NCBI RefSeq assembly: GCF_000150275.1
Contig: NW_002060958.1
Coordinates: forward strand, 402,374 to 466,373
From: Trichoplax adhaerens
Lineage: Eukaryota; Animalia; Placozoa
Direction: 5' to 3'
DNA: 64,000 nucleotides
This document shows, one piece after another, positions 1 through 25,750 of this stretch (position 1 is its first letter; each line of letters starts with the position of its first letter). A program made the position numbers and the translations under genes. The notes under the pieces are model-generated. The model made no database searches. It had not been told where the DNA came from and saw only the letters and a program-made list of their open reading frames with translations.

Positions 1-859
1 GCAATGAAGTATTTATTTTGCAAGTCCTTTGATTATGGCATTCGCTGTTATATTTGACATTAACCTTAAAGCATTTACATCGGTTCGTTGTATATGGCAT
101 AAGGCAATAACAGAAAGAATATTTTTACAACGATCAAAATAGATTCTAATTGTGCAGTTTCCCTAAGAATAATGGCTACACTATGTTATACATCGCCTGT
201 CGCTATACGAGTAAAAGATTGTTTACGTAAAATAAATTTTTTAGCATCGCAAAGTCTGTAAGTCAGGCCTTGCTGTGTATGAAACTTGTAATAGCTATCT
301 ATAGAAACAGCAAAATAACACGATTACACATTTTTCAAATCGCCTTTACCTCTTTCAGGCTTAAGCTGCGGTATTACACGATGTTATCAACTGCGTAAGC
401 TTTTAGTCGTTTGAATAATTTTTGCAGTTTGATTTTGCTTGTAACTGCAGATTCCTTTTTGCATTTCTGTATGAGCATTGGGCATTTGGCGCATTCATTA
501 CTCTTTACATTCACATGTTATTATCACTGACATCTACCTACAATGTCAGACTTGCAGCAAATTAAGCATTCTCTCATTGGAATATTTAAAATGAATTAAT
601 TCGTACGAATACATACTTAAGACTTTTAATGTGTACGAACAAGTAGGAAAAAGTAATGGAAATATGATAAAACTAGCGAAATTCTAGTACTTTTATCGAT
701 CTAGCAACGTTTTTGCAGTACATTAAATATTCTATTAACTATCGAACGTTACCAAAAGATTCAGTAAATAATTTATCTTTTAATGTTAAATAAAAGATAT
801 TTAATGCAGCAATTGTATGCGTATAACGTAAAAACAAACAAATTAATTTAGCTTTGATT

Positions 860-3800
860 TTAACATGAAACAGTGCTGTTAGCTTCAGAATTATCGTTTA
901 ACAAGTCGTAATCGTCATGTTTCTTAGGATATCCAAAAGCATTTCTTAGTATATTTAAAATATATCTAAATTGAATCTCGCCATTATTAATGAATCGATT
1001 ATTCTGCGAATTTGCATTATTCAGCTGATTCATATTATCCAACTGATTCACATCATTTAACTGGTTAGTATTATTTGACTGACTGATATTATTCGACGTC
1101 GTGCTATCAAGTTGCAGCATTTCTTCATCATCGTCTGAGTTTTGATTAAAATTTACAAAAATCATCCGATATGCTTGAACTACAGGTTGAAAATGTATCC
1201 CTTCTGTACAAAAGAATTGATATCCTCTTCGATATTTAACAATATATGTAAGTAGAATCTCGTCAACTTCGTCTTCTGTTAATTCTGATATTTTAAGATG
1301 TTTAAGTGATAAAATTGTAGCTACATAGATAACAGGTGTTTTAGCTATAGCAGAATTTAACGATGAAAACGTTTGAATCTTATAATCCAGTAAAACTGTT
1401 AAAACAAATATGAAGAATAATCCGCTTACAAAAATAATATTGAAGAATACACGCCATAGACTGATTGATATTTGAGGAGCGTAATAACGTAGATATTGAT
1501 ATAACTCTAAAGGAATAGCAACAGGCTGATCGCAAGTTCTATCTTCGTGTTTCTTTTTATCTTTCTTCTCATCTTTATTGTCAGATTTATCGTTATCATT
1601 ACTTATGCCTTCATTACTATTTTTATCGTCTGCGTCAGCCACTTCTTTCGGATAGTAAATCTGAGTTAACTTTTTTTCGAAGCCTTCGATCTTGCTATTC
1701 TTTAAATATTGAGCTATATATTCTAGCATATGATTGATCTTTTCAGCTTGCGGACAATTAGTGCAGCCATTAATACACTGCTTTAATTTAACTTTAACAT
1801 TCCCATCTTGTAATATTTTATATTCAAAAATAATTTTCGAGTTTCCATCGATAATCTGATGGTTAGGCTTGCGATTCATCCATTCAACATAGATCTTGAT
1901 GTATTTTCGGATGTTAACATCTTCAAGCATTTCTGGTAAATCTATAAGGATATCATCGTATGCCATGGCTACATAGACTTCCAAATAACCTTGATTTGCT
2001 TGTAGTATATTGCCTACTATTCGTTTTATCGCACCTGTATATTTTAAGGCGATTATTCGTTTTCGTATCATCCTATCAGTTTTGTTATAAGCATCAGATA
2101 TTTGGATAATGTAATGTACGTATGGAATCACTATAACGATAACAAGACTAAAGTAAACCGAATAAGCGACCACAAATGCTGTTACAGTAATAATGACTCT
2201 GAAAACGAGTTGAAGACCAATCCATAAAAAGCCTATCGTAACAAGGGAATATAAAAATGCTGCGCTAGCATAAAACATAGACATTAAATAACAAGGAACT
2301 CGCCAAGATGGATTAGTTGGTAGGAATGCAGTTCTTAATTTAATTGTTAATATTTCTGTCATAAACATTGCGCTACGGTAAGTGCCTACTCTTCCCGCTA
2401 TAAAAAACAGCAAGCAGAATAGTAATGCTACTAAGTTATTGAAAAGTCCTATAACATGAAATGATCTTAAGTGATGAGTTATCTTGTTAATATAGATGAA
2501 TAATTGAAAATAGCCTTGTCGATTGCTATTTCGCGACATATAGCGATATCGTTGTGATATTTTAGGTTGTTCCTGTTGACTCAATCTATATTTTGCTTTG
2601 CAAAATTGCCGGAGATCGGCTAAAAGTATAAAAAATATACCACCGCCGCTAATTAATGCTACTACCATAAATATTTGTTTGATAAAATGCGGTATAAGTG
2701 GTGTTATATACGGATACATTTTAGGAACAAGGATAAATAATATTGGAAATTTCTGTACAAATATCGATATAAACCCAGCTGACATACAAATTACTGTAAA
2801 TATACAATATTTAAAGGCATGATGTATATGTATCCAAGGATTACTGTCAGCTTTATCGGATAGATAGAAGTATCCTAGATGCTCTAGCTTACATTCATTT
2901 AATACACGAACACGAGTAGATTTGATTTCAATGTCCCTAAGATTAAATATTAGATATAAACTTTTAGAATAAGAAGATATAATAGCATAGATAATTGAGC
3001 GTTAAATTTTAGCATAGCATTAATAATAATACCCATCAAATCAGATAGTTACGCGATATAAAATTTGTAGTATCAATTAATTGATATTATAGAATAATCC
3101 ATATTATGATTGACATTTTAGCTCTTAGAGTTTCTACGACTTCAAGTTATCACGATACTCAAATCTAATAAGGTCTTTAGAGGCGTCAGATTTTTTGAAT
3201 TTAAAAGTGTAAATAAATTAAAGCAATATAGATATTCAAAGCTTGAATATAACCACAAGCACTAACTTTACGTTGGTATACAAAGTATGTTTATTTACAA
3301 TATTTATAGAATGTATTTGAAAATTGTACTGAATCACACTGATAATAATATAGATCGCGATCTTACCTTTCAAATTCCGTTATAAACCAATTTAAAATTT
3401 TGTCTGTAGCTGCTCCACTTAAAATGATGCTTAAACAAACTGAAAATAACTCCATCAATGGAACATACCATTCTAGTTTCTTCTCGATGAAACACTCGTT
3501 AATATTAATCTCCGTCTTCGGTACGCCACTTGGACAGCATGAATAGTAAATTTCATGAGCAAAATTTCCATCGTTTCTTATAAAATGTCTTTGACAGACG
3601 GTACCGCAATTTTTACCGCTACAACTACGATTTAAGCCTGTAAATTCGGCTAGTGCCTTGAATAAGATATAATCTTTACTTTCTAAGTCAGGCAGACGAT
3701 CGTAACAGCCGTCGGTAGATTCAACAAGAGACAACTTATATTCGGATATGAAAACAGAATAAAGACTTAGACTCGTGGCTATATAGGTCGTAGGTAAGGT

Positions 3801-4091
3801 ATAAATAGCCTCACCTAGATTTTTTTTTATCCATGCATAAAAATAAGTACCCCTCCAACCATTATGTGCAGGTATAATCCGATTTCCTATACTCATATTA
3901 AATAGAATCACTCTAGACCAATCCAATTTAGTCAAGTCTTTAAATTTAGTATAAGCTTGTGTCGCATCTTTTACAGATAATTGGCAGATAGCATCCGATG
4001 GTATTTGATTAGTATAACTTAAAGCTGTTTGCCAAGATAGCCAAATAAAAGTAACAACTATATAACGCGATATAAAGTGATTTGTTGCCAT
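860..4091 (-). CDS. Orphan polytopic membrane protein with Cys-rich ectodomain, tandem paralog 1 (933 aa; coding exons 4091-3367 and 2936-860)
   Basis: The 242-aa ORF ends at a phase-2 donor AG|GTAAGA (3367/3366). The acceptor ttaatcttag|G at 2937/2936 continues in frame (R-DIEIKSTRVRVLNECKLEHLGYFYLS...) into the 641-aa ORF. 725+2077=2802 nt, divisible by 3. Signal peptide, 8 ectodomain Cys, many hydrophobic helices; clearly homologous to the three other copies. Confidence 0.9.
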
Positions 4092-4839
4092 TTCGATTTT
4101 GCTATAATTTGAGTATGTGACAAAAGAAGTATAATGATTTCAGCCAGCTAAAGTAGTACGATAGTGTGTTTTGAAAGTATTTTAGTATCTGAAATAAAAC
4201 ACTATTAAACGTAGAATGTCGATTATGCTTAAAAAAGCAATCGTAAACTACGGATTAAAATGTAGACTTATTATAAGAAAGGCAACAAATATTTATTTTA
4301 ATTCTTGTCCTGTATAATTAGTAAGACTTCTACTAGTGTTTCTTATAGATAATCGATATCGTGTTGAATTTCGCCAAATGCTTTGATAAATGATAACGAT
4401 AATATATTTTACAAAGCTAATTATAACCTCATTGATAGCCCTAGTTCGAACAGGATAAGTAGAATGCCATTAATTCAGATAAATACTATCTATTTTATAT
4501 ATGTATAGATAATTTAAAACACGCTGATAGTTTCTGTAGAAAAATGATTTTAACCATTTACTGCTTTGACAAGAAAGTCTAGGATAGCTCTGAAACCAGG
4601 AGGCAAATGGAACTCTACGATCACTTAGACGGTACTAATTATAAAGTTACCAAGTACGACTTACGTAAATAAACGAATAAATAAGACTAGACAACATTTA
4701 TAGGCGTCGAAAACGTAAATATGACAATTAACTAGTAGTGTTAAATCGAACGATAATAAGATGTGAATTGCATTATTGTTCCTTAATTATAGATTTACGA
4801 GGAATTGATAGTTTTCTAGTTGAATCTTAAATTACATTG

Positions 4840-6740
4840 TTATTTGCCGTAATTTATCCTAGTTTTATCCAGTAGACATAAAAGTAGACGCAATTATATT
4901 TTACTATAGTAACCAATGAGCTATAGTCGATAATGTTGAGTAATAGAATTGGATTTGTGTTTATTGCTATATTTGATCTGCTTCTTAAAATTAAACGATA
5001 GAACTATACTGACAATAAAACATTCGGAGTAAAGAAGAGATTATTACGGAGTCTCGCTAATAATATTTACAAATTTCTACAACTACAGATTATAATTTCA
5101 AGGATCAGAATAATTGTCACCGAGCTCATTGAGTAATTTATTGTCACCGTATGAACTTCCGTGAACCACATATAACTAAACTTAGCGAATTTAACAATCT
5201 TGACGGCGATTGCCATTACGCACTAGGAATAATAAAAATTTACCTTGCCATTAGAAACGAAAGTAAGTACTGTATACTTTTCTCAGTAAAAGATGCACAA
5301 ATATAGTTTTTCATTTTCGGATAATATCGTCAATCACACAGAGAGATTATAATAGATATAGTATAGCTAATAAGTCTTATCAATAGAAAAGTTCGTAAAA
5401 CGCGTACTTCAACTTATGCTGTATTGAGCACTCTACAGTCTACAAGCACCATTATTTATACCTTTAAAATGAATATATCTTTGATGACAGTTATGCTCCA
5501 TACAAGGTCGGTTCAAAGACAGATTACCAACTCCGTATATTAAGCAATCGAATTAGAACTACTGTTAACTATTACGTCATCGCTTTGTTCTTTAGAATTT
5601 CTTAAAGTTATATAGATGATGCTAGAAGTATATCCAAATTGAATTTCGCCTTTATCGAGTAATCGATGATTCTGTTCTGTATTAACATCGGACATAAGGG
5701 TTGCATAAGTTGAATAAGGATTACAATTTCCTAATATCATCCTAAACGCTTGAACTACAGGTTGAAATTATAATTCTCTTGTACAAAACAATCGATAACC
5801 TCCATGACATTCAGCGTAGTATCTAAGCAGAAATTTAAAGGATGAATTTGACTAGATAAAATTTGAAATTTACAGGCGTCAAGAACGCGAATGCAGCAAT
5901 CCAATTGTGCGCTTAAATTAGACAACAATAAATTATAAATCTTCTGTGAAAATGATAGTTTTCTATTTAAACCGTTAAAGAGAATGTTGCTCCCATTGTT
6001 ACATCCCAAACTTTATCCTGTCATTCATAAAAATAGACTTAATTATGTTTTCTCTGACAGTGCGCTATTTCGTTTTACGAATTAGTTATATATTTTCGAG
6101 CAAAATAGTAAATCATGTCATGATAGTTACCAATGAGCCATAGTTAGTGATGATAAGTAATAGCATTCGATTTTTATTCGTTCCTCTATTAGGGAAGCCT
6201 TAAAATTCTCCGATAGCACCAATGAATAAGATTTAGAGTGGAATAGAGTTTGTTATGAAGTCTAGCTGACAAGATTTCACAGATTTCTATAGCCAAAAGT
6301 TATAGACTTAAGCTTAAGAACAGTTCTTAATTTTTCCATTGAACATTTTATTGTCCCTATATGAAGTTACATCAACAGCATATAGCTTAATATAGTGAAT
6401 TTAACAATCTCGATGATTATTTCCCTGACGTACCAGGAGCATTAAAAATTACTATACCACTGAAAGTAAAACTAAATATGTTTTCTTAGTAAAAGTTGCG
6501 CTAATATAATTCGTCTAACTATCCTTTCGTTTTCGAATAATATTGCCAATCACACAGAAGGATTGCAATAAGGTATAGCTAATAATAGCTATTAATAGAG
6601 GATTACTTATCTTTTTCAACTTCTACAGCATTAAGATCTTCCAACCTATAACTATTTGTACCTTTAAGATTAAATATCTTTGATGACAGATATACTGGCT
6701 AAAAAAGTATTTCGAGGCAGGTTACCAATTGCGTTAATTA
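4840..6740. repeat. Diverged ~0.65-0.7 kb direct repeat (about 4840-5540 vs 6060-6740, offset ~1200 bp)
   Basis: Co-linear matching blocks: accaatgagc (4912/6129), gaatttaacaatct (5187/6397), caatcacacaga (5331/6547), atatctttgatgacag (5475/6674). Boundaries approximate. Confidence 0.75.
5540..5805 (-). pseudogene. 3'-terminal fragment of a fifth copy of the tandem membrane-protein family
   Basis: Translates as GGYRLFCTREL*FQPVVQAFRMILGN...NHRLLDKGEIQFGY...NSIA*. It matches the family motifs RGYxLFCTxGIxFQPxVQAYRM and GEIQFR but has an in-frame TAA, and I see no homology upstream of ~5805. DNA most resembles paralog 1 (gcttgaactacaggttgaaa at 1173 and 5748). Confidence 0.85.
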
Positions 6741-7959
6741 GATATGAGCTCGCTGTGAACCATGTCATAATTTAAGAGATTGATATATAAGGACTTTGTT
6801 AGACTATAATCCTTTATTGATAGTTGAATATTATTACTATTTACGGAAAATAATATTGTTTTTTACGTCTGATATTATTAATTAATTAATTTGCAGTGAT
6901 AAATACTGAGGTATTAATTAATGACTCTAGCCGTGATATCTATTAATTAGCGCCTAGTCCCATAAGTTACGCTAAGTTGTATCTAAATTAAATCGAGTAA
7001 TCTTTGGTGTCTGTATACTGTGTGACTGAGATGATATTATACAAGATCTGAATACTAAATTGTTAACTGAAGTTTCACCCGAAATCATAGCGGAAAATAC
7101 TGATACCTTTTGGATCTAAATGATCCTCTCATCAAAATACTATTTGTACTACTATCTATTGAGTGTTGACTTTGACTTACAAGTTATAAAATAAACTAGC
7201 TTTCCGCTACTGAAGGTCTCCAGAGGATAGATAGAGCCTAACTAGAATAGATATTAAAGTAGAAGGATAATCACCAGAGTCGTGATAGTATGTTAAGCAA
7301 TATAATCTAAAGTAGTAGTCTTTGCATCATCTTCCTTTTTAGAATATCTAAAAAAGCTTTTTGGATAGTGCTGAAATCAGATCAAAATTGAATTTTTCCT
7401 TTATAAATTAACCGATGATTAGGTTAATCTATATTAGTATAGGATGATGTAAGGGCTGTATAATTTGGATTTGGATTAAAATTACCGAATATAATTCTTG
7501 TAATTGGTATTATACTAATTATATTAAGAGAAGAAGGTATAGTAAAATACGAACGCAATCACAGTGATGGCGCTTTTTCAGTTTAGATCAGTTTAACAGT
7601 CAGATCTAATTGTAATTAATACTAATTATATATAGGAGAGCCAGATTCAGTAATAAACGCAAGTTAAAACTATCTCAGACTTTGTATTAAGGTAAGGGTA
7701 GTTTACTAGCGTACGATCAAACCCAAGATACCGTACAATAATTATAATCGGAGTACCTCTTCAGCCATGGTAAGCTTAGTTGCGCATTTACACTAATTGT
7801 CAGTTAAATCTTAGAACTTAATCCTAGTAATAGGGCCTAGTTAACAATGATCCTGTATGCTTACAGTAGGTCAATAAAAATTTAGGGAGTAGATCGTACA
7901 TTGTACAGTGCTTATATTAATTAATTTTTTATAGCAGTTACGTCCTTGTAAAGAGCGAA

Positions 7960-8200
7960 TTTTTAAATCTCTTACAGTCCGAATTCGCCATCTTGAAATT
8001 TGAGTTTTTAAATCAGGTAAATTTCTAGTGTGATAGTAAATAGGCTGAGCTACTTTTAATCTTAAAAGCAAAGTTCATTTTGAGTCAGGCTATCGAAGAA
8101 GAATCTAATTTCTTCCCCTTCTAAGAAATGGTGAAAACGGCTAAGATAAACCGAATAACCAACTTATTAGACTCTATAATAAAAATTCGATACAATTTGC
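7960..8200. repeat. Conserved downstream element, copy A (3' of paralog 2)
   Basis: Shares blocks such as gaagaat..aatttcttc and ggctaagataaaccg.ataa.c.actta with 13310-13680 and 19660-20012. Confidence 0.65.
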
Positions 8201-8747
8201 TCAATCCAATACTCCTTTTTGATACTCTGCTGAGGAAGTATGAATTATATTTGTATATTATCCGCAAGCAGAAAATGATAGCGTTTCATGATACTAGCAA
8301 TCACCTAAAATTGCTTTATTAAATTATTTATATATAAGGTTATGCACTACTCAATAACCACGAATCGCATTGGTGTATTGCGTCATCAAAAATAGAACAT
8401 TACTATATTTGATACTGCTAGCAACCTTCTTCAATTATTTTATTAAGCATCACACAAGAATTACTAAAAGCATTTGTATATTACTAAAACACAGAACATA
8501 ATAACGTTTTATCATACCAGTAAACATCTAGAATTACTTTATTAATTAGGTACTATTCAAGAATTATCGATTGCATTTGTATATTATTTAAAAACACAAC
8601 ATTATATCGCTACGTCATCAGCAGTCATCTATAATTGCTTTATTTAGCGCAGCGACTATTCTACATCACATAGTGCTTTATTTCATATCACAGTTCTATT
8701 TTTAACACATCTTACTATAATAATTACCTGATATCGCTACAGTCCTA

Positions 8748-11666
8748 TTATGATGTGCGATGTAAAAGCGATTCACGTTCACTGTTTATTGAAAAATCTT
8801 CCTCCTGTCCTTCACAATGTCCAAATGACTGTTTGATTTTTCTAAAGATGTTTCCTAATCTCAATTTGCATGTACTAAGGAATAGACTATTTGCTTGATC
8901 ACGGTAAAGTTCCATTCCTATTGTTCCGCTATCAACACTATCAGGAAAATTATTTGCCAGACTCATCCTATACGCCTGAACGATAGGCTGAAATTGTATT
9001 CCTTTAGTACAAAATAATCGATAACCTCTTCGATATTGAACTATATTAGCAACTAATATCATATCCATAATCTCTTCCTTTAATGCTGGTATTTTAACAT
9101 ATTGAAGCGATAGATTCACTGCTAAAAGAATAAAAGGCAAACTAGCAATGGCAGAGCTTAATGATGAAAATGGTCGAGTTCTGTAATTCAGTAAACTGGT
9201 TAAAATAAAGGTTAGAAAAATCCCAGTTACAAAAATAATATTGATTATCATGCGCCATAGACTGATCGATATGTGCGGTGCATAATAACATAGATATTGA
9301 TGTAATTCTGAAGGAATAGCAATAATCTCTGTATTAGCAATGTCTTCTTTACAGTAATAAATTGGACATAAGTGACTTTTAAAATAGTTACGGTCGCTAT
9401 TCCGTAGATGGTGTTCGATTGTTGTTAACAGCATGTCAATTCCAAGAGTATAAGGACAACGACGGCAGCCATTGACACATTGAGACAGCGTTACTACTAC
9501 AGTCTTATCAGGCAGTATTTCATAACGAAAAACAATTTTACATATTCCATCTAAAATATGGTGATTAGGCTTTTTTTGGATCCATAGAATATACCTAGTA
9601 ATATTATGTCGTATCTGATTGTCTTGCAGCATTTCAGGTAAATCAACTAGAACATTATCGTATGTTATAGTTACAAATACATGTAGATTTCCTTCTTTAG
9701 CACGCAGTATTTCTTTAGTAGTTTGATTTACTTTATCCTGCAATTGAATTATTCGCCTTGATATTATTTTCTCATTTCTAAAATAGGCGTCAAAAGTATA
9801 TACAATATAATACAAGTAGGGGACTACAGTAACTATAACGACGCTAAAATAGACCGGAAAGGAAATCATAAAAGTCACAACCGTAATAATTATCCTAATT
9901 ATAAGCTGAAGGCCCATCCTTATGGTCAATATAGTGGAAATCGAATAAAACAGCGATATAAAGGCTATCAGTGTGGATACGATATAGCTAAGAAATCGCG
10001 CTGACATTTTTTCAGAAAGTAATGCCTTTTTCATTCTCATATGGAACAATTCTGCTATAAACATAATACTTCGTAAATTACCGATTCCTCCAAATATATA
10101 AAATGGTAAGCATAATATAAGCGATAAGAAATTGATGGTAAAGCCTACGACATGAAATGACCGCATGTGGTAAATTGTGCTATTGATATAATGCATGATT
10201 TGGAAGTGTAATTCTCGATAACTGTCTGGTGAAATATAGCGAAGTCGATGTGGTTCCTCAAATATAGGCCTATATCGATAGGAATAATCTTCACGGCTAC
10301 AATATTGTTTAAGGTAAGTCAAAATGATGAAAAATATAGAAATACCACAACTGTAGACTAAATATAGAAATGCTTGTTCTATAAAGCGTGGTATTCTAAC
10401 TTGATACATGTTTGGAAAGATAATAAAGTGAGCTGAAAATTTTTGCATAAAAAATGAAAAAAATCCAATCGAAAAGGTAATAACAGCAAATAGGCAATAC
10501 TTGAATGCATAATTTACAAGCGCCCAGCCAGTTCTATGTTTATTCTCTGATAGATAGAAATATCCCATATCTTGCAGTCTAAATTCGTTTAGTATTCGTA
10601 CAGAGACAGATTCAATTTTAGTATTTCTAAAATAAAATTATAAGAAAACACCAAACAGGAAGAAATAAATTAGTGTTACATTAAACGAATATTGGCTTTA
10701 TACAAACCGCGCTACGTTATTCTAAATTTATAAGATTAATATATTTAGCCTATGTAAGACCATAGACTAATATCATAACAAGGTAATTTCGTTAGGTATG
10801 CTAAGATTTCGCTATCTTATACCTTAACTTTTTATTAAACAAATTAAGAAGAAAATTAACTTATCCAATGAATACAATTAACAAAGTTTTGAACTTAACC
10901 TTTATTTCTACTAATATTGTGGTTGCTATTTAGCTTACCTTTCCAATCTTCGTAGATACCAACTTATTATTCTATCAACAGCTGTCCCACTTAATAAAAT
11001 GCTTAACAAAATTGTGACTAGCGTTACTACAGGGATATACCATAGAAATCTTTTCTTAATAAAACATGTTTGAATATTTATCTTAGCGTTTCGTGGATCC
11101 TTTTGACAGCAGGAATATATATCGATATTATGAAAGAATGCATCCTTTTGTGTAAAATTTCTTCGACAGATAGTACCGCAGTCTTCGCCACTACAACTTT
11201 TATTCAATTCAATCAGTTCAGCCAATGCTGTAAATATAGCATAATCTCTAGAGTAAGAGTCTGATAAGTGGCCATAACAGCCAACTGTCGATTCATTAAA
11301 AGATATCTTCAATGATGACATAAAAACTGCATAAAGGCTTAAACTCATAGCAGCGTAATCATTAGGCAAAGTAAAAATAATTTCGCCTACATTTTTCTTA
11401 ACCCAGCCAAAAAATACAGTGCTATTATGATATCGGTGAACTCTCTGACGTCCTATATACAGGTCGAATATAATCACTCTAACAGAATCAGATTGGATCA
11501 TTTCATTTAAATGCATATAAGTTTGCGCTTTATCTTGGATAACAAGTTGGCAATTGTTTTCATAGGGTGATAGATTCGCTTGAATATCAACGAAATGCAA
11601 TGATAGACAAATCAAAGAAAGGATTACGCAGGGTCCAGTAAATCGATTTATTTTGTTATAAATCAT
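8748..11666 (-). CDS. Orphan polytopic membrane protein, tandem paralog 2 (868 aa; coding exons 11666-10939 and 10626-8748)
   Basis: Donor AG|GTAAGC at 10939/10938; acceptor ttttattttag|A at 10627/10626 gives in-frame R-NTKIESVSVRILNEFRLQDMGY. 728+1879=2607 nt. Same Cys pattern, TM pattern, and PNHHILDG / QCVNGCRRCP / YRRGY motifs. Confidence 0.9.
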
Positions 11667-13309
11667 GATTGCTTGTGATGAGAAGAAACAGAGCTAGAAT
11701 AAAGGATATTCATAAATAGTTACTGTTGAAGCTATCTGCAGTCTTGTATTTTGGAGGAGATCAGCTATCATTTGATGTAGATTGCGATTATTTCTTAATC
11801 GTCATAATGCATTAAGGGACATTTCAGCATGCCTTGACAGGTAAAATAAATATTGTTCCGGTCATGGTTATACCTATCTGCTATCGACTATAAGGACAAA
11901 ATGTGAGAACTCTAATTGGCTAGAAATAATCGTACACAAATGATTTGAATCGAGTTTAAACTGAAATTCTATCTACAGTATTTGGGTTATTTTCCTTTAA
12001 CTACCGTACTGCTTCTATACCTGCAGTGGTCAATAAATACTGTTTTAGGTGACGTTAAAGTTTACAACAAAGGGATAACGTCCCATCATATTGAATCTTA
12101 TTAGTAACAATAATTTTAAATTATAATTGGTACCTAATAATATTTGTTATGATTGAAATTCTCTAAAACTAGTAGAATGAGATCTTTAAGGTAAAAACGT
12201 CAATCGATATTACGGAGAAATATATTTTATTTATAAAAGCCATTATTATCTTCTGGTGAAGTGTAATGATCGAAGTTGATTGTAATAGGCATTTTAAACT
12301 TCTTGGCAGTAAATTAACTGATATCTTAATTTTACAAGATTCATAACACCGCATGCTAGTAATTTTAAATAAGCAACATAACCGACCTTGATTTTCGATC
12401 ATATAGCCTGCTATGCGAGTATAGCATAACTTCTAACTGCGTTAAGGGTTTCTTTTAAAAAATATCGCGAAAAAATTGAAAAGAAACCGCACTATACCGT
12501 ATTTAAGAATTTCATCTTTTGTTTATGAAAGATTGCCGTACTTTTTAATTTCGGGATAAGCCGTAGCTGTTTTACTCATTTCTCTAGTTCATGTTACCTA
12601 TTTGATTTATTAGTTTGATTTATTAGTTTTTAGTGGTGATGCATGCGAATTTACTTTCATTTGCAATGGCTGGTGTTCAGATCACCTCCCATTTGGTCTA
12701 TGCACATCTGATACATTCGGTTGCAGGCACTTGCTGTGTTGCTACAACACATTAGATAATAGCCAAATTTATCAAAGATGGACGACTGCCAATCGTAATC
12801 AAAGCTGGTGTTTTAATAAGTTCAGCATTAAACTAACTTCCATTTAGCATAGGTAAATTTAAGATCATTTGCCAAAGCTGGCGCTAAGCTAATTTCTCCT
12901 TTCAACCATATGCAAACGATATACGTGTTTTCGTCCTCAGAGATTTATTGTTACTTTTCATAAGACTGTGGAAGATTTATAAAAGTATACGACTACCAAA
13001 TATTAGTAATAGTGCTTTTATAGGTATAAATGTCAATCTGATATTCATCTAGTATTTAGCTACTATGGCATAATTAGTATTAATTAAAATGAGCCAGTTT
13101 AAAGCACTGATGCCATTATTAATAGTAGTTCTGTAAGCAATGCAATATATGAACTCAATATTTAGAAAGGATATCTAAACTAGCATTTATTACACGAATA
13201 TGAATAGAAGTAACTAGTATGGAAAAATATTTGGTAATGCCCTTTCAAGATCAGATATCAATCAGATATTAATCAATCGCACTAATAACTCATACAAGAT
13301 CACCGTAGT

Positions 13310-13680
13310 GTACGGATTCTTAGCCCTAGGTTCGTAATCCATCAACTCCAAATTCTGAGTTGTTAAAATCAAGCAAATCCCAATGTGACACAAAATAGTC
13401 AAAACTGTATAATTGACTTATAACAGTTAAGTTTATTAACGTCCGTGTGGCGTCCGTCGGAGGAGAATTCCAATTTCTTCGCCTCATAATAACAGTCGAA
13501 AATGGCTAAGATAAACCGGATAATCGACTTAGCCTCCACGATAACATTTCTTTACAACTTATATAAATTATCATCAATTGCTCCTCTACATAGGAGTCAT
13601 CAATCACATTAGTATATTACTTAATAACTTGACTTAATATTACTATCAGTTACGTCCTTATATAGCACATACTCTATTAA
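13310..13680. repeat. Conserved downstream element, copy B (3' of paralog 3)
   Basis: Co-linear similarity to 19660-20012 (gttaaaat, aaatagtcaa, agaattccaat, gataatcgacttagcct, gtcatcaatca) and to 7960-8200. Confidence 0.7.
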
Positions 13681-14159
13681 GATATACAGTTCTACACTAA
13701 ATACTATCGCTGTATTGCCTACACAAAACTACTGCAATTGGCTAAAATCACTACAATCACTGACCTAATTATTATTTCACTACATAGCAAAACTATAAAA
13801 CAAACGACAGAAATTATCATAGAACACAGATGAAATACATTACCCAGAATATAGTGTAGAATGTAATATTATTATCATACAATTATCATGTTAAGTAGTT
13901 AGATTGCAATCACAAGATGTGCAAATCACAGTAATAGTAAAATATGCAGATCAAGAATAGTCATAATTCAGCAAGTACTAATGATGTAATATTCTATAAT
14001 TCCGCAATGTATCGCAGTTACAGTAGGCAAGATCTTAGCACTATAGCAGCTTACCAGAAAGTATGTTATCAACTACATTAGAGTGTAATGATTCAATATC
14101 TTTCGCGATTATAATATGATGAGATTTCTTATCAAAATTCTTTACATATTAGTTAATGG

Positions 14160-17100
14160 CTATGCAATAGGATCAGTAGCAAATTTATCTACCAGAGGCT
14201 CACGTTCTCCTTTAATTCCTACGCGTTCAGCAATTGCACTATTTTCACTTGAGTTAGAAGTACGTATAAAAATATTTTTAATTGCTTGAAAAATAAGTCG
14301 AAATTGGATTTCTCCTTTATATATAAGTGAATTTGCTTGATTAGACTGATTTTCATGAATGGAAATTTCTTCTTCTACACCGTCCTTATAGGCATCATCA
14401 ATAGTTTGGACATTATGAATCTCAGCTGCTGAATGACCAGTATTTAATTGAAATGCACTATCCGTTGCTATTTCTGTTGACGGACTGTTAATTGATTGGG
14501 TTATATCACTATTAGCTTCTGTTGTGATAACAGATTGATTTCCGCTACTAACTGTGCTTCCTACTGATCGATTACTATTTGAATCTACTTCAGGTATATA
14601 AAATTTTATAGTCTTATTTTTTCTATGGTAATGTTCAAAAGTTGCTCTAAACGACTGAAGGATGGGCTGAAAATAAATACCTCTTTCTAAAAATAATCGA
14701 TAGCCTCGTCTATATTGAATAATATTAGCAATCAGTATTCTATCAATAGTTTCTTCATCTATTTCTGTTGCCACTAAGTAATTCATTGATAGAATAGTTG
14801 CTAAGTAAATATTCGGTACATGTGCGAGTGCAGAATTTAATGATGAAAATAATTGCGTTCGGTAATCTAGTAATATTGTCAGAACAAATATGAAAAGTAG
14901 ACCTGATGCAAGAATAATGCTAGATATTAATCGCCATAAACTTGATGATATCATTGGTACATAATATCTTAGGTATTGATACAGCTCAGATGGAATTGAT
15001 ATGAGCTTATGATGAGCTATATCATCGTGAATAAAGTAGACTTGTTTTGTCCATTTAATGAAATCTTGTGAGTTATTGATATTTAAATGATTTTCAATAC
15101 AATGTTTTACTTGTTGGAAACCTTGCGAATATGGGCAATTTTCACAGCCATTTGTACATTGTAATAAGCTTACTGTAGTCTGCTTTTGATTATCGTTGAC
15201 AGTCTTGATTTCATATTGTATAACAATTTTAGATATTCCATCAAAAATCTGATGATGAGGTTGATTTAATATCCACGAGATGTACTTTTTCAAATTTTTC
15301 ATGACTTTTGGGTCTTTCAACTTTGCTGGTACATCAATTTTGATCTCATCGTAACCATTGGCTAAATAAACTTCTAAAACACCTTTCTTAGCGTTTAACA
15401 GGGCATTCATTTCATCTTCAACTTTATCTTTCACCTTGATTATTCTTGTTGGAATCATGCTACAGTTTTTATTATAAGTTTTGATTAAATTTACAATATA
15501 ATGTATAAATGGAATTCCAATCACAACAGCGAGAGTAAAGTATGTTGAATATGTAATCACAAATGCTATAATGGAGACAATAATCCTAAATACAATTTGA
15601 AAGCTAATCCATAGCAGAGCTAGGTGCATGAACGAATAAAGATGACATAAAAATGAAAGATAAAAAGATAGTATACGATTAATAAAGGGCCACTTTCGGC
15701 TGTTTGGCATATAAATTTTTCTTAGTTTTAATGTTAATCTTTCTGACAGGAAGACTGCAGTACGAAAAGTACTGACTTGTGCAAAAAGGAAAAATGGAAA
15801 AGCAAATGTGAACGCTAAAATATTAAGGATGAATCCAGTAAGATTAAATAATCTTATGTGATGTATCGCGTCTGTAATATAAGTTATCATTAGTAAATAT
15901 GATTGGCGATAGCTTGTTCGTGTAAAATGTCGATGATGTTCTGTTTGGATATTATGATTGGCACCATAGCAAAACAATTTTAAATGAGCGACGACAATGG
16001 TTACTGTACTAATTATTAAGGGGACACCTACCGCTAGTACATATTTTTTTATGTTAAAGGGTATTTCAAGATGAGTCTTAGGAAAAATCATGAACATAAG
16101 AGGAAATTTTTGTATGAGGTATGATGCTGATGCAGTAGCAAAAGATACAATTGGAAGTAAGAGATATTTTAAGCTATCGACAATAGGCTTATAACGATAG
16201 CTGGATTCACTCTTATGGCGAATAGTATACCCTAAGTCTTGCAATGGTGAAGGATTCAATATGCGGACACGTATAGATCCGATTGTAGTATACCTAAGCA
16301 GGAATTAAGAGAATTAAATTTAAGTCAATAGATCTTGAAACTTTATTATGCACGTATACTAAAAATGAAGAAGATCACCGTAATAATCATTTAAACTTTT
16401 TAAAATGTCTACATTTATTATTTTTCATGCAAGAAACGAATGGTACTCGTACTTTTTAGAACAAGTAGTAAAATAAAATACTGGTTACTAGGCGATCTTT
16501 CGGTATACTAAAGTTTAAAAATTTCAGATACAGGTAGTATCTGTTACAGTTTACTTTGTGTATATAGCTACCTTACAGAATTATATTATAGTACATCCAG
16601 TCGTACAAAGATGATTTCCAGAAACAGTTACGATTAAGTCTATGCTTTACTAAAGATAAATGTACAATCTTCATTGACTTAAAATCATGATGACATTCTT
16701 GTATAAATTGGCAAATTCATTAAATAATAAAGTTAATTTGCAATCGGTGTAAACTTACTCGCCAAAAATTGCATACCTTAAAAAATGTATAAACATTATC
16801 AAAAGTCTTTACTTAATTTACCGTAGGCAGAATGTATGCTAGTGTATAATATGAAATAACGCAAAATCAATAATCTACTCCGAACTTGACATGATATTTG
16901 TTATCTTAGTCATTATTGATGAATTTGCCAAAAACGAAGCATATACTATAACCGTTACAATCATTCTAATCTCGTGAACATCTATCTTCACTATATTTCA
17001 TACGAGAAATGATTTAAATCTTTTGTAGAGTCAATGACAAAGTGTTGCAATAATATTATTTCGCTTAATTAACCTTATATAGAAGTATGCTAGTGTAATT

Positions 17101-17886
17101 TAATATAATTGCAGATTAATAGTTTGCACTAAATTTGACTTACAATATTTGACGATCCAAGTATTTATTGATGAATCTGTTCAAAGCCATTCCGCCTAGG
17201 TGGATACTTATTATAGTAGAAACCGCCTGCATTAGTGAGACATACCAATCAGCCCTCTCTTCTGTCAAACATTTATCAATATTAATATCTCCAGTCAATA
17301 AATCTTTATGACAGCATGAAAAGACAATTTTATCGCCAAGCCAACCATCATGTTTAGTATAATTTCTTCTGCAAATAGTTCCACAACTGTCGTTAGTACA
17401 GTTTTCCTTTAATCGAGTAAAATCAGTTAAGGCTGCAAAAGTAATATAACCCTTACAATAATCATCATGGAAGCGATGATAACAACCGGGAGATGATTCT
17501 TGGAAAGAAATTTTCAATTTCGATATGAAAACGGCGTAAAGACTAAATGTTAAAGCAATGTAATCGCTAGGCAAAGTAAATACACCTTTCCCGAGATTTT
17601 TCTTAATCCATGCGTAGAATATAGTCCTGCGAGTGCCAATATGAGTAGTTTTATTGCCTATGTACAGATCGAAGAAAATTGCTCGTATTGATTCCGTTTT
17701 AAGCATTTGTGTAAAATTGACGTGAGCCCGTGGTCCTTCCTTGATACTGAGTCGACATTGTAGCAAGCATGATGATAAATTGAGTTGTGAAGTTGCGATA
17801 GAATGTGGAAATACTAGCAAGATATAGATTATTAAGGGTAGGCAGTAGGATAGAGATCGATAACCAGTAGTTTTTGTGTTAATCAT
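14160..17886 (-). CDS. Orphan polytopic membrane protein, tandem paralog 3 (958 aa; coding exons 17886-17144 and 16293-14160)
   Basis: Donor TT|GTAAGT at 17144/17143; acceptor ttcctgcttag|G at 16294/16293 gives in-frame L-YTTIGSIRVRILNPSPLQDLGY. 743+2134=2877 nt. Confidence 0.9.
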
Positions 17887-18029
17887 GATGCCGATAAAAT
17901 TACTAGTAAGTTTTATAGAACGATCTTTTGCCTTCTTTCCATTTTAAGCTTATAATACTAAATAAAACTTAGCGCAAAATACAGTAGACGTGTTCTGGTT
18001 ATTTAGAGTTTTAATATGAATAAATTGGA

Positions 18030-18470
18030 TGTAAGAAATGAATGAGTACAAAGATTCTTTCACCCGCTACAAATTTTCTATTCGACTTCCTTTGGACATG
18101 GTAAAATCTTTAACAGAGGTTAAATTCGGTGAAAAGTGAATGAAATAAAATAAGTATAAATAACAAATGATTCCATTAAAAAATTAGTCAGCATGCACAC
18201 GCCAATAAAAGCGAAAATACCTCGATGTCGGCCTTATTTGACCAAAGCTACTAATGTGAAAATGTATACCGCACTACTCATATATAAGTAGTTGACGAGG
18301 GAAAGAGGTGCTCGATTAATTTTAACTGCCTCAGGCTAATGTTTTACCTGGGACATTCTATAAGTTAGGAAAATCTATAAAATACATTTAAAATAAATAA
18401 TATTGGACATTATCATTGTCAAGGTAATTACTTTTGGAGCACTTTCCCCGTAATTTTTTATTGTAAATGA
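18030..18470. repeat. 5' flank of paralog 3, homologous to the 5' flank of paralog 4 (about 25890-26310)
   Basis: Ordered shared blocks: agaaatgaatg, ttcggtgaaaa.tgaat, caataaaa, gttga.gaggg, agctaatgt/ggctaatgt. Confidence 0.65.
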
Positions 18471-19659
18471 TAGTTAAATATGGAAAGTAAATATCCTAGG
18501 ATGACAAAACTTATTACTCTTTGCTCGATTTCTCGTGAAACTGAAGCTCTAGTATTTAGCCTTCGCAAAATTTAGTCTTCTTTAGCCTTAATAATAATAT
18601 AGGGCAGAATCTTCGATAGATTTCGATTTAGATTGTTTAATAAGGAGAAGCCTCTGCAATATAGTGTAGATAAAAGGCGAAAAAAGGCTCTAGTACAGCA
18701 ACCACTCGTAATTTAGTTCATTGAATGAACAGACATAGTAAACAAAGAGGTGTTATAAAAATTAGACTCTGTAACTTATGCTATTGCGTTTTACCGTATC
18801 TAATAGCCAGAGCTATATCAATAAATGCTACATTATCGGTGTAATTTTGCAATCTAATTATCACCGTAATGCATTGATTGGACATTTATACTACTGTTTC
18901 GTAGGTAATTACACTTATCCTCAACATTGCATGACCGAAATTCACGATGAAATTCGGAAACTGTACCGCTATTGTCGATCTTATTAAGACACGGTCCACC
19001 ATTGGCCTAATACTGCTAATAGGCAACAATTGAAGACTACCAATTAAGGCCTTAAATACTTAGTATAAATTGTACAAGCAGTAGAGTGCATACCCGAGTA
19101 TTTCATCATTAGCCACTATTTTTTAAGCGATTTATTCTACCTAATCTACTGTATCATATAATTACAATGTCAAGGGTTATTAGTAATACTTCAACAAGCC
19201 TGCAAATCGTTGATAAACTTTCAACAACAGTTTGTAGAAGCGGTTGTTTTAAAAATTTCAGTCAATTTGCAAAATGTTTAATTTCGTAAATTGACGGTAA
19301 CTGTCGTTAAGCTGTGGCACTTACTCACATTTAAAATTAGACAAAATTTGTAAGCGAGTAAGTAAGATTTTATTAATACCTCATAGAAAAAGATCAAAAA
19401 TTTTACTGATAATTATATAATATACTATACATTCTGATGTTACCTCAAAATCGTTGGCGTTTAAATGTTTCAATAAAGAACATTTCCTATTATGTCGAAA
19501 AATCACCTTGATCAGAGTCACTAAAACTATCCAGTATCTTTACGATATTGTCAAGGTCGATTTCGACGTTTTTCGACTCATCATCACATGAGATTACATA
19601 CTAAACACTGCATGAATACACTAATTACACGTCCTTATAATATTATTTGATCTTTTAGT

Positions 19660-20012
19660 GTACGAGATCTTGACCCTAAGTTTGCAATGCGATAACTCAA
19701 AATTTGAGATGTTAAAATAGAGCAAGTCTACAACGTGTCATAAATAGTCAACACGGTATTAATGACTTTAAAAGTAATCTTTATAGCGCCTATCTGTCCA
19801 AGAAGAATTCCAATGACTTCTTCTCATAAGAATATTGGAAATCGGCTAATTAAATAAACTAGATAATCGACTTAGCCTATACAATAACAATTCCATCAGC
19901 TTGGATAAATTATAGTCAAATACTCTTCTACTGTACATTGAAGTCATCAATCAAATTTATTGCCTAATAACAGAATTTAATATGCCTATCAGCTACGACC
20001 TAATATAACACA
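19660..20012. repeat. Conserved downstream element, copy C (3' of paralog 4)
   Basis: Co-linear similarity to 13310-13680 and 7960-8200. Confidence 0.7.
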
Positions 20013-22018
20013 TAGTACACGTAGGAAAATTGAATTACGTTGAGCCCCGGGTTAAATAAGATAGGAGATTTGCGGTGTTAGAGGTAATCTATTAGGTGTT
20101 ATAGGCGTAGCGGATTATTAGTGGATAAAGCTAGGGATATTAGTCGTACGGTTAAGTGGGACTGCATGGCACCTCAAGAAGAGGCACCGGCACGTCTCAG
20201 TAAATGACGGATGACTGGCCCAAAGTAGGGGATGACAATCATACGTAGCTTGGGGTCTTGTATTTGCAAGAGCTATATTAAATGTTAATTAGAATAAGGA
20301 GTAGTATAGGAAAGTTAAAATAAGATATTTCTTCAACAATTTACTTTGCAGAAATCTGATTTTGCTTTAGTTTGATTGCGTCGTAGAACTACTCTAATAT
20401 AGAAGTAAGGTATTCTTATTAGTCATTTGTGTTTAAGAATAATTCCTTCCGCTGTACTTCTTATATTCTAGAACGATCATCTTGCACCTATCTCGTTAGT
20501 TAGTTCAGCTAGCTACATGATAAGCTCGCACGCTTTACTTATTCTACATTGCTATAGTTATTTGACCAGTAACGTTGTTGTACATACTGTAGCCTAACTC
20601 GGTTTTCTCTTCGGCATTAATTCCAATAAACTACTTCTCTGCTAATTTAACTCCAATAATCTATTGCAATCATGACGGATCGCAAGTCTTCCAAAATATT
20701 ACCAATCTTACATAATTTGATTCGGTTACTACGTAGTAAAGGATAAGTAACCCACTTAATTAATGTAAAAAATCTATTGAGATATTTATATTAAAATGCA
20801 GAGACATAAATAGATTATGTCAAGTGTAGAAGTACTGTGGGATTTATATTGTGAGGCTTTAATTAGAAACATGAATTATGAATAGATGGCACGATAGTAA
20901 ATTTAGATATAATCTGATGACTTAATTGGTAAGATATGATTACGCTGAAGGAACATCATTCCGTGACTTATAGAATATACATCGTGAATATTTCTTTAAT
21001 AATCTAGATAGCCTAGGGATAGTCTGATTGCACTAGATAGTCCTTGTAACTTCACTTTATTATATCTCGGCTTGTCTTACAATTCCTGTACAAGAAACTG
21101 TAGTTCTGTTTTTATATTTTCTTTCATTATACCGCCCATCATCAATAATTACTTTGTTAATATGTATTAACAGAATTTTTTTATATAAATTAAATAATTA
21201 AAAATAGTATGTTAGGCTGTTGGATATAGAATGGATTATTGTACGTCATACAGTGAAGCTTATTCTATTTTACTTGCACACTTTAAACACATTTTACTGC
21301 TATAATTGGCTGCAATATAATGGATATGAAATTATTATAATGAACACTTTGAATTCCAACTTAAGTTATATTTAGATATAAATACCAGTTTACTTTAAGT
21401 GTTAACAACAAACTTACATAATTACTTAGAAGAATTATAGAAGGGCCAAACTACTACTGTAATCAACCAAATTATTCAAAAAATGAGATTGCTGGAGATT
21501 TTAGGAATATCCTAACTTTTATCTCCTTATTTCATTACATTTCATTAATTTTTACTACTGAACTGTACTACTTTTTCATACAGTATGCTACGTAGAGCAG
21601 TTTGTAGTACCAAACAATCATCTTATTACTCTAAAGTATTTTAAATTAAATTAGCAATCAATCACATATAATAAGATAAATACTACTGTAGATTCCCGAA
21701 ATTACCAAATCAATAATAATCGTAATCTGTCTTAAATTTTGTTTTGCTATCATAATTGGAGCATGATTATAGAAATTAACTAAATATTTCACTTAAATTG
21801 CAATCAAAAATTGCATAATTCTTAACATAATGATGCTACTGGATATCGTTTAATTCTAAACCTAATACAATAGTCGGGTTCACAATATACAGACGATGAT
21901 GAAATTGTAATTTGTTAATGTTGTTCTCGAAAGTCTTTTATACTTCAACTACTCATGTCTTTCGATTTATGATCGAGTGAATTTTTTTGCCTAGATTCTA
22001 CACACATGAATTCATCTG

Positions 22019-25000
22019 CTATGCAATAGGATCCATAGTTGATCTATCGATCAGAAGTTCACTTTCCGTATTAATCTCTACATTTTCTACAATTCCATTT
22101 TCATTTCTGTTATTACTGCATGTAAAAGCATTCTTGATTGCTTGTAAAATAAGTCTAAATTGAATTTCTCCTTTCTTTATAAATAGATTTGCTTGACTAG
22201 ATTCATTTTCGTTATTTTCAATTCCCGCCGGGCCAATACTTGTATTAAATTGATTTCCATTCGTGATAACATTTTCTGACGATTGATTATTACTCGATAA
22301 TGTTTTACTAGTATATAGCCTTTCAGTCGTATTGATTTGGTTGTATCGTCCAAAAGTTACTCTAAAGAACTGAAGAATCGGCTGAAAATAAGCTCCTCTT
22401 TCGAAAAAGAATCGATAACCTCTTCTATATTGAATAATATTAGCAATCAATATTCTATCAACAGTTTCTTCATCAACTTCTGATACTTTAAAATAATTGA
22501 TCGAGAGAAGCATTACTACATAAATAACCGGAGTGTTAGCGATTGCGCTATTTAACGATGAATACGATTCTACTCTGTAATCTAGTAGTACTGTCAAAAT
22601 AAAGATGAAAAATATACCCAACACAAGAATAATATTGGATATTATTTGCCACAAGCTTAATGATACTGATGGCATATAATATCTTAGATATTCATATAGT
22701 TCTGACGGAATTGATATACGTTCATAATGAGCGATATCATCTTGGATAAAGTAAACTTGTTTTGTATACTTTAAAAAATCTTGACAGCTATTGCTATTTA
22801 GATAGGTTTCGATACAATACTTTACTCCTTCGAATTCTCGTAAGAATGGACAGCTTTTACAGCCACTTGTACATTGCAGTAGGCTTACTGTTGTTTGCTT
22901 TCGATCATCATCCATAATCTTGATTTCATATTGTATAACAATTTTGGATATTCCATCAATGATTTGATGATGAGGTTGATTTAATATCCATATAGCATAA
23001 ATTTCTAGTTTTTTCTTTACTTGCGGATCTTTCAGCATTTCTGGTACATCAATTCTGATCTCATCGTAATCATTGATTATAAACACTTCTAAAACAGCTT
23101 TCTCAGCATTTAATATTGAATTCATTCTATCTTCGACTACATCTCTTAATTGCATTATCTTTGTTGGTATTCTACTACAATTTTTGTTATAAACATTGAG
23201 AATCTGTATTAAGTAATGCATAAATGGAATTCCCATAACAATTATCGGAGAAAAGTATGCTGAATAGGCAACTACAAAAGCAATAATAGATATAATAATT
23301 CTAAATACAAGTTGAATTCCCATAAATAGTAGCATAATGTTAACACCTATATGGCAAAAACACAATGATGAAATACAAACGGATATGGCAGGATTAATAA
23401 ATCGCCATTTTGGATTATTTGATAGATAAGCTTCTTTCAGGTTTAGTGTTAATCTTTCCGATATAAAAAATATCACACGAAAAATACTAATTCGAATAGC
23501 AAGGAAAAAAGGCAAAATTCCTGCTAGCGATAAACAATTAAGAATAAATCCGGTAAGATTACGTAATCTCAAGTGGTATAGCGCAGCTTTAAGATAATTA
23601 GCGATTAGAAAATACGATTGTTGATAGCTGATTCGTGTAAGATACCGATGTTGGTTTGCTTTGACTTTACGACTAGCATCACTCCAGAATAATTTTAAAT
23701 GAGCAATGATAATTATTATTGTAGCAATTGAAAAGGGAACAGCCACTCTTAGAATTAAATGTATAGTTTTTGAGTGTATATTTAGTCCTTTAATTCTGGG
23801 ATAAATCATAAACATTAAAGGTAATGATTGTATAAAATATGACAATATTCCAGCAGCAACAGATACGATTGTAAATAAGAGATATTGTAAGCTTATGATG
23901 ATAGGTTTATAATGATAGCTAGGGTCGCTATTATAGCAAATAGCATACCCTAATTCTTGCAAAGGTAAGGGATTCAAGATATGGACAGGTATAGATCCGA
24001 TTGTAGTATACCTAAGCGTGAATTAAGAAAACTAAAGTCAATTAAGTTCCCATCAATAAATGTTAGCGCATTATACATTTAATTTTTAGTTAGAAATTAA
24101 AATAACGTTTATAATCGAAAAGATCATTATGAATGACTGCATTTGCTATAAATTGGTATAAGGAAAGAATGACCTTGGCGAGAATTTGGAAAATATAATA
24201 TTGTTTACTGAATAATGTCAAGTGAATTGAATTTCAAAAAAATTTTTACGATGTCGTACTTAGTGTTGCATCCATTTTAACAAAAATAGAATACCCATAT
24301 ACATGGAAGTATGATCTACTGAAACTCTTTTAATTCTGACTGCTCTTAACTAACAGTTAAAATATAACTTAAAATAACATAAATGAGCCCATAATTTTCC
24401 CATGCAAATATGAAAGTTGTAAAGTAATTATTTAGCTTGGCTATAACGTCGCTTGGTAACAAAATTTCAGGACTCTTACAATATTACTTTATATTATACA
24501 CATCTATAATTCATACGGAACTGTGGCTGTTGGACCAAGGCCAAACTAGTGATACATCCTTTAGTAAATAAAATAATTTTGTTTCGAAAAATGTAACACC
24601 AAATTTAGCTTTAGATTAAAGATTTGTACGTAATAATATAAGTTGTGGGCTTGATTGCAAGATTGTCCGAGAATTTATTTCTAGATGACATCTACGATAC
24701 GTAATTTAGCTTTTTTATAGCAGTGAATACGGTAAAAGCAATAGCTACCGTATTAATTGGTCATACGATAGTGAGTTGAATTTTGAGCTTACTACTCACT
24801 TGATTGGCAAGATTGGTAATTTTACTAAAAATCATAGTTACGTTTTATTATAATATTTTAAAGATGCCACATCATATTATATTATTCTACTTTAAACTTA
24901 ATGATACTATAACACTTTACTTTGCATTAAGCATATTACCGTGCTTTAGTTAAACTAGAGGTGAGCAAGCGTAATTAAAATATTTCAAAGATAACGTTCT

Positions 25001-25750
25001 ATACTAAACTTACATTATTTGCCTTTCCAAGTAATTATCGAAGACTTCATTTAAAGCTATTCCGCTTAGGTAAATACTCACTGCCAAAGTGAACACTTGC
25101 ATTAAAGGGACATACCAATTAACTGTATCTTCTTTTAGGCATTGTGCAATATTAACTTTCCCAGTTAGTAAATCTTTTTGACAACATGAAAAGTCAATTT
25201 TAGTAGTAACAGTGCCATCATGTTCACCATAAGATCTTTTGCAAATGGTTCCACAGTTATCGTTTGTACAATTTTGACTTAATCGAGTGAAATTTACTAA
25301 AGTTATAAATGTAACAACGTCCTTACATTCTTTAGGTATACGACGATAGCAGTCAGGTGGCGATTCTTGGAAATTGATTTTTAATGTCGATATGAAAATC
25401 TTATAAAGACTAAATGTTAAGGCAACATAATCACCAGGCAAAGTAAATACAGCTATTCCTAATTTTCTCTTGACCCATGCAAAGAATATAGGATTTTCAT
25501 AGCCTTTATTTTTATGAACAGGTTGGTTACCTACATAAAAATTAAAGAAGATTGCTTTTATTTCTTTAGTTTGAAGTATTTGGGTAAAATTAGCGTAAGC
25601 CTGTGGTTCATCCTTAACGTTGAGTTGACACCATGTACATAAATCGGCCTGTGCTTTTACGGTAGAAAATAGAGGCAATAGCAAGATATAGATTGCAAGC
25701 AGCATGCAATAGGGTATATGTCGATATCCAGATTTTATTAAGTTCATCAT
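22019..25750 (-). CDS. Orphan polytopic membrane protein, tandem paralog 4 (909 aa; coding exons 25750-25014 and 24011-22019)
   Basis: First ATG at 25750 (the track's 25795 start is a GTG). Donor AT|GTAAGT at 25014/25013; acceptor ttcacgcttag|G at 24012/24011 gives in-frame M-YTTIGSIPVHILNPLPLQELGY. 737+1993=2730 nt. Confidence 0.9.

Follow-up and report, generated by a model that had tools for sequence, protein, structure and literature searches.

Four tandem genes within the first 26 kb of a 64,000-nucleotide stretch of the Trichoplax adhaerens genome (contig NW_002060958.1, positions 402,374 to 466,373; the whole analysed stretch is termed the window below) encode multi-helix membrane proteins of 868 to 958 residues, members of a lineage-restricted family that fits no known kind. 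It is near certain that they are real paralogous genes maintained by selection. The predicted layout of their products comprises a signal peptide, a glycosylated cysteine-rich head, nine membrane helices, a cytoplasmic alpha/beta domain and a structured tail, and the mechanism we tentatively favour for them is that of surface sensing receptors.

Four intact two-exon genes

The genes are read from eight long open reading frames (ORFs) on the minus strand that form four pairs of a short and a long frame. In all four, a GTAAG donor closes exon 1 in phase 2 and the frame of exon 2 opens immediately 3' of a TTAG acceptor, and neither exon contains an internal stop codon in any of the pairs. Joined, they yield proteins of 933 (241+1+691), 868 (242+1+625), 958 (247+1+710) and 909 (245+1+663, counted from the ATG at 25750) residues for genes 1 to 4, and the exon boundaries share one single column in the four-gene alignments. 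The initial annotation of this DNA had proposed precisely such a joining through a phase-2 GT-AG intron at one homologous position, and its donors, acceptors, frames and lengths were reproduced throughout. The same alignments contain the eight invariant cysteines, the W..K...G....TLP..Y motif of the ectodomain, the SSL.SA.A linker and the tail motif YRRGY..F...G..FQP..Q..R that it had listed. Gene 2 lacks a further tail motif, GEIQFR, which the other three genes have.

As evidenced by transcript contigs of runs X5 and X6, which derive from two independent studies, gene 1 is transcribed and spliced: these contigs skip exactly positions 2937-3366 and do not contain the intron, a piece of 430 nt that reads CT..AC on the plus strand. 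The read-level check covered this junction of gene 1, 3367^2936, which had been suggested for inspection in RNA data. In run X1 the intron of gene 1 is covered, as it would be by genomic DNA. The junction peptides predicted for genes 3 and 4 are present in the public gene models P0006 and P0005. Note that contigs of X5 and X6 also reach approximately 550 nt upstream of the gene 1 ATG (window 4203-4640) and that X6 contigs are found downstream of its stop codon (window 300-829); these represent long untranslated regions or unannotated neighbouring transcripts.

In the youngest pair, genes 3 and 4, synonymous divergence (dS) is 0.68 and the ratio of non-synonymous to synonymous divergence (dN/dS) is 0.41-0.47, while dS is saturated in the older pairs of the window. 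Four intact frames of 2.6-2.9 kb with 36-57% identity and this degree of constraint are far beyond what chance could produce. That the ORF pairs might be decaying pseudogenes or chance frames is thus highly improbable, in spite of a decayed tail fragment located between genes 1 and 2 and of several copies upstream of the window that carry stops inside the match. Evidence against it comes from four uninterrupted frames that are under constraint and from orthologs in Trichoplax sp. H2 as well as in placozoan-type DNA of more distant origin, and for gene 1 the observed transcription and splicing refute the idea directly. A tail fragment comparable to the one between genes 1 and 2 lies just ahead of the window start (G000:C1399:401989-402201).

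Public records

The initial annotation considered the genes hidden, a view that did not hold, as three of the four have public records. Gene 1 is identical, residue for residue, to the 933-residue protein TRIADDRAFT_60552 (P0001), composed of exon 1, an arginine and exon 2. Gene 3 corresponds to TRIADDRAFT_60554, for which the public model has 701 residues, and gene 4 has the 909-residue ortholog TrispH2_008795 with an exon 2 that is 99.7% identical. For gene 2 (8748-11666), no protein of at least 50% identity was found in a collection of 15 billion proteins, and it seems to be absent from the public annotations of both Trichoplax genomes. The ectodomain is likewise on record as the Pfam domain of unknown function DUF8415 (PF28478), which covers the exon 1 ectodomain of gene 1 and of its relatives. 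Membership in DUF8415 is defined by a match of the protein to the hidden Markov model, and PF28478.1 is assigned to P0001, P0004 and P0039 in a precomputed listing from a Pfam release newer than our local copy, which does not include the model. The domain is also named on the 217-residue exon 1 product of a related contig, L060. Rather than hidden, the genes should thus be called uncharacterised.

Literature searches with the gene identifiers, with PF28478 and DUF8415 and for placozoan-specific membrane families retrieved no paper, and none on DUF8415 itself. In the accessible part of the supplements of PMC10580291 and PMC12013895, where cell-type expression was sought, the gene numbers do not appear, and a search of assembled contigs for an exact P0001 entry returned no record.

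Predicted architecture and topology

Whole-length analyses were carried out with the database protein P0001, that is gene 1, and genes 2-4 were analysed per exon. By inspection the N termini resemble signal peptides, in line with a helix spanning residues 4-25 in the model of the head. In 23 aligned heads C36 and C129 are invariant, and five further cysteines as well as W87, G93 and P100 are conserved to at least 90%. The structure model of the head, calculated from 23 paralogs, reaches a predicted local distance difference test score (pLDDT) of 83.5 and a predicted template modelling score of 0.73, and it describes an alpha/beta domain with six to seven strands and five to six helices. The head would be a disulfide-rich, N-glycosylated domain of approximately 180 residues and the only sizeable extracellular part of the protein. 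For whole gene 1 the AlphaFold model is of moderate quality, with a pLDDT of 65.5.

The density of N-glycosylation sequons is 2.37 per 100 residues in the head versus 0.70 in the large loop, at equal asparagine content, and the number of lysine plus arginine residues per loop alternates (4.9, 1.3, 5.6, 3.3, then 0.3), with 7.8 in the tail. Together with the hydrophobic segments and the helices of the AlphaFold model, these values lead us to infer a topology of nine helices with the head outside, the 200-residue domain and the tail inside, and very short outer loops.

Among 22 paralogs from the same genome Q303, Q484, F496, F504, P513, Y525, D574, P576, L653, P717, Y810, G813, Y814, F817 and G821 are invariant, and R488 is retained in 21. 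Two of the invariant polar residues, Q303 and Q484, are located within predicted membrane helices, as is the nearly invariant R488. The region of the YRRGY motif in the tail is modelled as folded, with a pLDDT of 80-91. For the loop domain we considered a zinc site formed by a histidine and the CxxxCxxC motif of gene 1 as a trait of the entire family and rejected it: no more than 10-11 of the 22 paralogs carry the three cysteines, with positions C633 and C636 occupied in 16 of the 22, and histidine stays below 12 of 22 in every column. The CxxxCxxC motif is at most a subfamily trait.

Comparison with known families

Pfam searches with the eight exon products and four database relatives yielded sub-threshold noise only, and the hits to Glyco_transf_61 (E 0.08) and Folliculin_C (E 0.084) were dismissed as such. 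A profile search of Protein Data Bank (PDB) sequences returned nothing below E 0.5, the ESM Atlas contained no usable match for either the whole protein or the head, and Foldseek comparison of both models with the PDB gave nothing at E≤0.001. The head thus combines a confident predicted structure with the lack of a PDB neighbour. These Pfam and profile searches uphold the previously noted absence of signatures for G protein-coupled receptors (GPCRs), kinases, Cys-loop and ionotropic glutamate receptors (iGluR) and epithelial sodium channels (ENaC), and the confident full-length match to a characterised family that would have spoken against a novel family was found neither in Pfam nor among PDB sequences or folds.

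GPCRs of any class were rejected, as no seven-helix core matching the 7tm models of Pfam or the fold of a GPCR was recognised, and so were the Cys-loop, iGluR, ENaC/DEG, TRP, voltage-gated-like, OSCA/TMEM63 and anoctamin channels, for none of which a pore-forming domain was matched by Pfam or structure. The GOLD-domain seven-helix (GOST) proteins comprise TMEM87, GPR107/108, GPR180 and Wntless, with several members of unclear function. Like the placozoan proteins they combine a cysteine-containing luminal or extracellular head of approximately 200 residues with a multi-helix core, but the placozoan head is modelled as alpha/beta and not as a beta-sandwich, there are nine helices rather than seven, and a 200-residue cytoplasmic domain is placed between helices. 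An assignment to GOST or Lung_7-TM_R (PF06814-type), defined by a GOLD beta-sandwich head and seven helices, was rejected; there was no Pfam match, and no GOST-type chain was among the fold matches shown. LMBR1/LIMR-type proteins share the nine helices, an outside N terminus, an inside C terminus and a large cytoplasmic insertion, but they have neither signal peptide nor cysteine-rich head and carry the insertion elsewhere; no Pfam or fold match connects them to the placozoan family.

Lineage-expanded chemoreceptors include the insect-type GR/OR seven-helix channels with their GRL relatives and the chemosensory GPCRs of nematodes and vertebrates. They too occur as tandem arrays of many diverged paralogs restricted to one lineage, but the placozoan proteins are twice as long and have a cytoplasmic domain in addition to a folded head, and no relation in sequence or fold was found. 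In particular, 7TMIC/GRL proteins have approximately 400 residues, an inside N terminus, seven helices and a motif in the last helix, as opposed to a signal peptide, an outside head, nine helices and 870-960 residues here, and the Pfam scan of exon products and relatives gave no match to 7tm_6 or 7tm_7. The alpha1-alpha2 platform of proteins similar to class I of the major histocompatibility complex (RAE-1, ULBP3, EPCR) is also counted among the closest known systems.

It is quite unlikely that these proteins represent a strongly diverged offshoot of some known multi-pass family, be it GOLD-headed with seven helices, LMBR1-type with nine, or an insect-type seven-helix chemoreceptor channel. 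Such a relation could have escaped us insofar as the whole-protein model is moderate and exceeds the length suited to a sensitive domain search, the alignments consist of paralogs only, and the fold searches covered the PDB.

Family size and taxonomic range

A profile of exon 2 matched the T. adhaerens genome 34 times and a profile of exon 1 matched it 25 times. At least 25 loci belong to the family, which is organised in tandem clusters on three contigs: C1399, on which the cluster from 369 to 428 kb includes the window genes, C1411 (1.565-1.606 Mb and 2.04-2.19 Mb) and C1397. Searched against 1.84 billion representative proteins, the exon 2 profile detected 35 proteins at E≤0.001, and all those labelled with an organism are from Trichoplax adhaerens or Trichoplax sp. 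H2. The remaining ones originate from the Logan runs SRR30664516/7 and two ENA metagenome assemblies. As their contigs have 32% G+C and the identical two-exon layout, and the 3' flank of one of them matches the orthologous Trichoplax locus at 76%, these relatives are best read as sequences of other placozoans; the same search found no relative outside such placozoan-type DNA. Word-index searches that used alignments A5 and A4 of the family contributed nothing beyond matches from Trichoplax and proteins without a source label. On one related contig, a partial neighbour gene had no match in the T. adhaerens genome.

Some of the Logan and metagenome relatives are only approximately 25% identical to any T. 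adhaerens copy and in a quick tree form a clade without a T. adhaerens member, a clade that was probably lost in Trichoplax or never gained by it. Its members are P0023, P0026, P0028, P0030 and P0031, possibly joined by P0027, a long branch of unsure placement, and they derive from L033, L034 and L031 (Logan SRR30664516/7, ENA ERZ23499115). The same samples also carry orthologs of other clades with 50-77% identity. The four window genes group with P0007, a protein from one of those samples (Shimodaira-Hasegawa-like approximate likelihood ratio support 98), and the sister of this group is the cluster just upstream on C1399. Provided that P0007 stems from a different species, genes 1-2 separated from genes 3-4 before the species themselves diverged. 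Overall, the data support the initial description of an old, expanded, intact and lineage-restricted family of proteins of approximately 900 residues with signal peptide, ectodomain and many helices.

Divergence of the head and possible function

We tentatively favour a role in surface sensing, given that the head is the sole substantial part on the predicted outer side, that the genes form an expanded tandem family, and that conservation extends over the helix core and the cytoplasmic parts. The head would bind an external ligand, such as a cue from food, a microbe or a conspecific, the ligand-induced change would be relayed via the conserved core of helices to the domain and tail on the cytoplasmic side, and the tandem expansion would provide differing specificities.

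A near-identical inverted duplicate upstream of the window fits a diversification of the head. In a 1136-nt block shared by its copies (G000:C1399:367491-372209 and 380341-384990), all 17 mismatches fall inside exon 1, whereas the 449 nt of flank and intron are free of them, a distribution for which we calculate a chance of approximately 2e-4. The mismatches alter 15 codons, 12 of them non-synonymously and three synonymously. One of the two copies has lost a conserved cysteine and has a shorter exon 2 frame.

Several points weigh against surface sensing. The cluster of mismatches in exon 1 could be explained by gene conversion instead of diversifying selection. Within the window the head diverges at the same rate as the rest of the protein (34-54% versus 36-57% identity, with similar dN/dS), unlike typical arms-race receptors. 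The nine-helix topology is based on simple statistics, the location in the plasma membrane is an assumption, and Pfam scans did not detect any of the known domains or motifs of signalling proteins. Ligand binding or signalling is supported for the family by neither homology nor fold matches, nor by expression or experiments, and none of the homology or fold searches points to any of receptor, channel or transporter. In addition, the invariant glutamine and arginine residues inside the helices suit transport or an ion path equally well.

The proteins might hence be ion channels or solute transporters, in which S299, Q303, Q484 and R488 would line a path for permeation or substrate and the head and cytoplasmic domain would be regulatory, a possibility that we hold to be doubtful. 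The invariant glutamine and arginine residues within the nine helices agree with it, conservation is strongest in the cytoplasmic parts and in residues 484-525 of the hydrophobic stretch 455-525 rather than in the head, and many channels have a large cytoplasmic domain between helices. Nevertheless, there is no match in Pfam, PDB sequences or folds to any channel or transporter, and neither an internal repeat nor a pore-loop signature was seen.

A luminal head would give the same topology as an extracellular one, and the family could comprise membrane glycoproteins of secretory or endolysosomal compartments, such as granule, lysosome or cargo receptor proteins, with the cysteine-rich head facing the lumen. 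According to PMC12013895, digestion in Trichoplax is external and its secretory cell types are numerous, and the conserved tyrosine-containing elements of the tail could act in sorting. The tyrosine motif is however predicted to be folded rather than a free sorting signal, and at least 25 diverged paralogs exceed the usual need for such housekeeping roles, so that we consider this placement unlikely.

Features of the window

The coordinates of the four genes and of individual elements are listed in Table 1. At higher coordinates than the array, three exon-sized ORFs on the minus strand encode a GTPase of the MMR_HSR1 type (30150-30524, E 2e-12), a weak match to FAA hydrolase (32827-33156, E 0.008) and a protein tyrosine kinase exon with a possible membrane segment ahead of it (37168-37743, E 8e-7). 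These are exons of ordinary multi-exon neighbour genes.

Table 1. Genes and elements of the membrane protein family in the window
Feature	Position	Strand	Remarks
Gene 1 (TRIADDRAFT_60552) exon 1	3367..4091	-	predicted signal peptide, DUF8415 ectodomain, first membrane helix
Gene 1 intron	2937..3366	-	430 nt, GT-AG, phase 2; spliced out in contigs of runs X5 and X6
Gene 1 exon 2	860..2936	-	eight further predicted helices, cytoplasmic domain, tail, stop codon
Gene 1 large soluble domain	1475..2086	-	residues 526-729, probably cytoplasmic; subfamily CxxxCxxC and acidic/basic low-complexity insert
Gene 1 YRRGY	1220..1234	-	core of the conserved tail motif; Y810, G813 and Y814 in 22/22 paralogs
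Gene 2 exon 1	10939..11666	-	from ORF, splice frame and alignment
Gene 2 exon 2	8748..10626	-	intron of 312 nt at 10627-10938
Gene 3 (TRIADDRAFT_60554) exon 1	17144..17886	-	from ORF, splice frame and public model
Gene 3 exon 2	14160..16293	-	intron of 850 nt at 16294-17143
Gene 4 exon 1	25014..25750	-	start at ATG 25750
Gene 4 exon 2	22019..24011	-	intron of 1002 nt at 24012-25013; ortholog TrispH2_008795
Decayed tail fragment, fifth copy	5540..5830	-	between genes 1 and 2; ..FQPVVQAFR.., ..GEIQF.., in-frame stops

Significance

New in this study are the splice evidence for gene 1, the link to DUF8415, the confident model of a head without a PDB neighbour and the clade structure, with one branch that lacks T. 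adhaerens. Placozoans have very few cell types with which to perceive food, microbes and one another, and to our knowledge most of their receptors are unknown. The proteins might constitute an independent, placozoan-specific class of cell-surface receptors for chemosensation or microbe recognition, with a head fold and a nine-helix core found nowhere else. Although we regard this as a long shot worth stating, it would mean that an animal without neurons has invented a large receptor repertoire of its own. Should the family instead serve endomembrane housekeeping, it would be of no more interest than any ordinary orphan family of a single lineage. As catalogues list it solely under hypothetical proteins and a DUF, any functional result would be new, and it is a possible source of a new membrane protein fold. 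With at least 25 large membrane glycoproteins, whose outer domain is confidently modelled and has no solved neighbour, it provides a candidate set for placozoan sensing.
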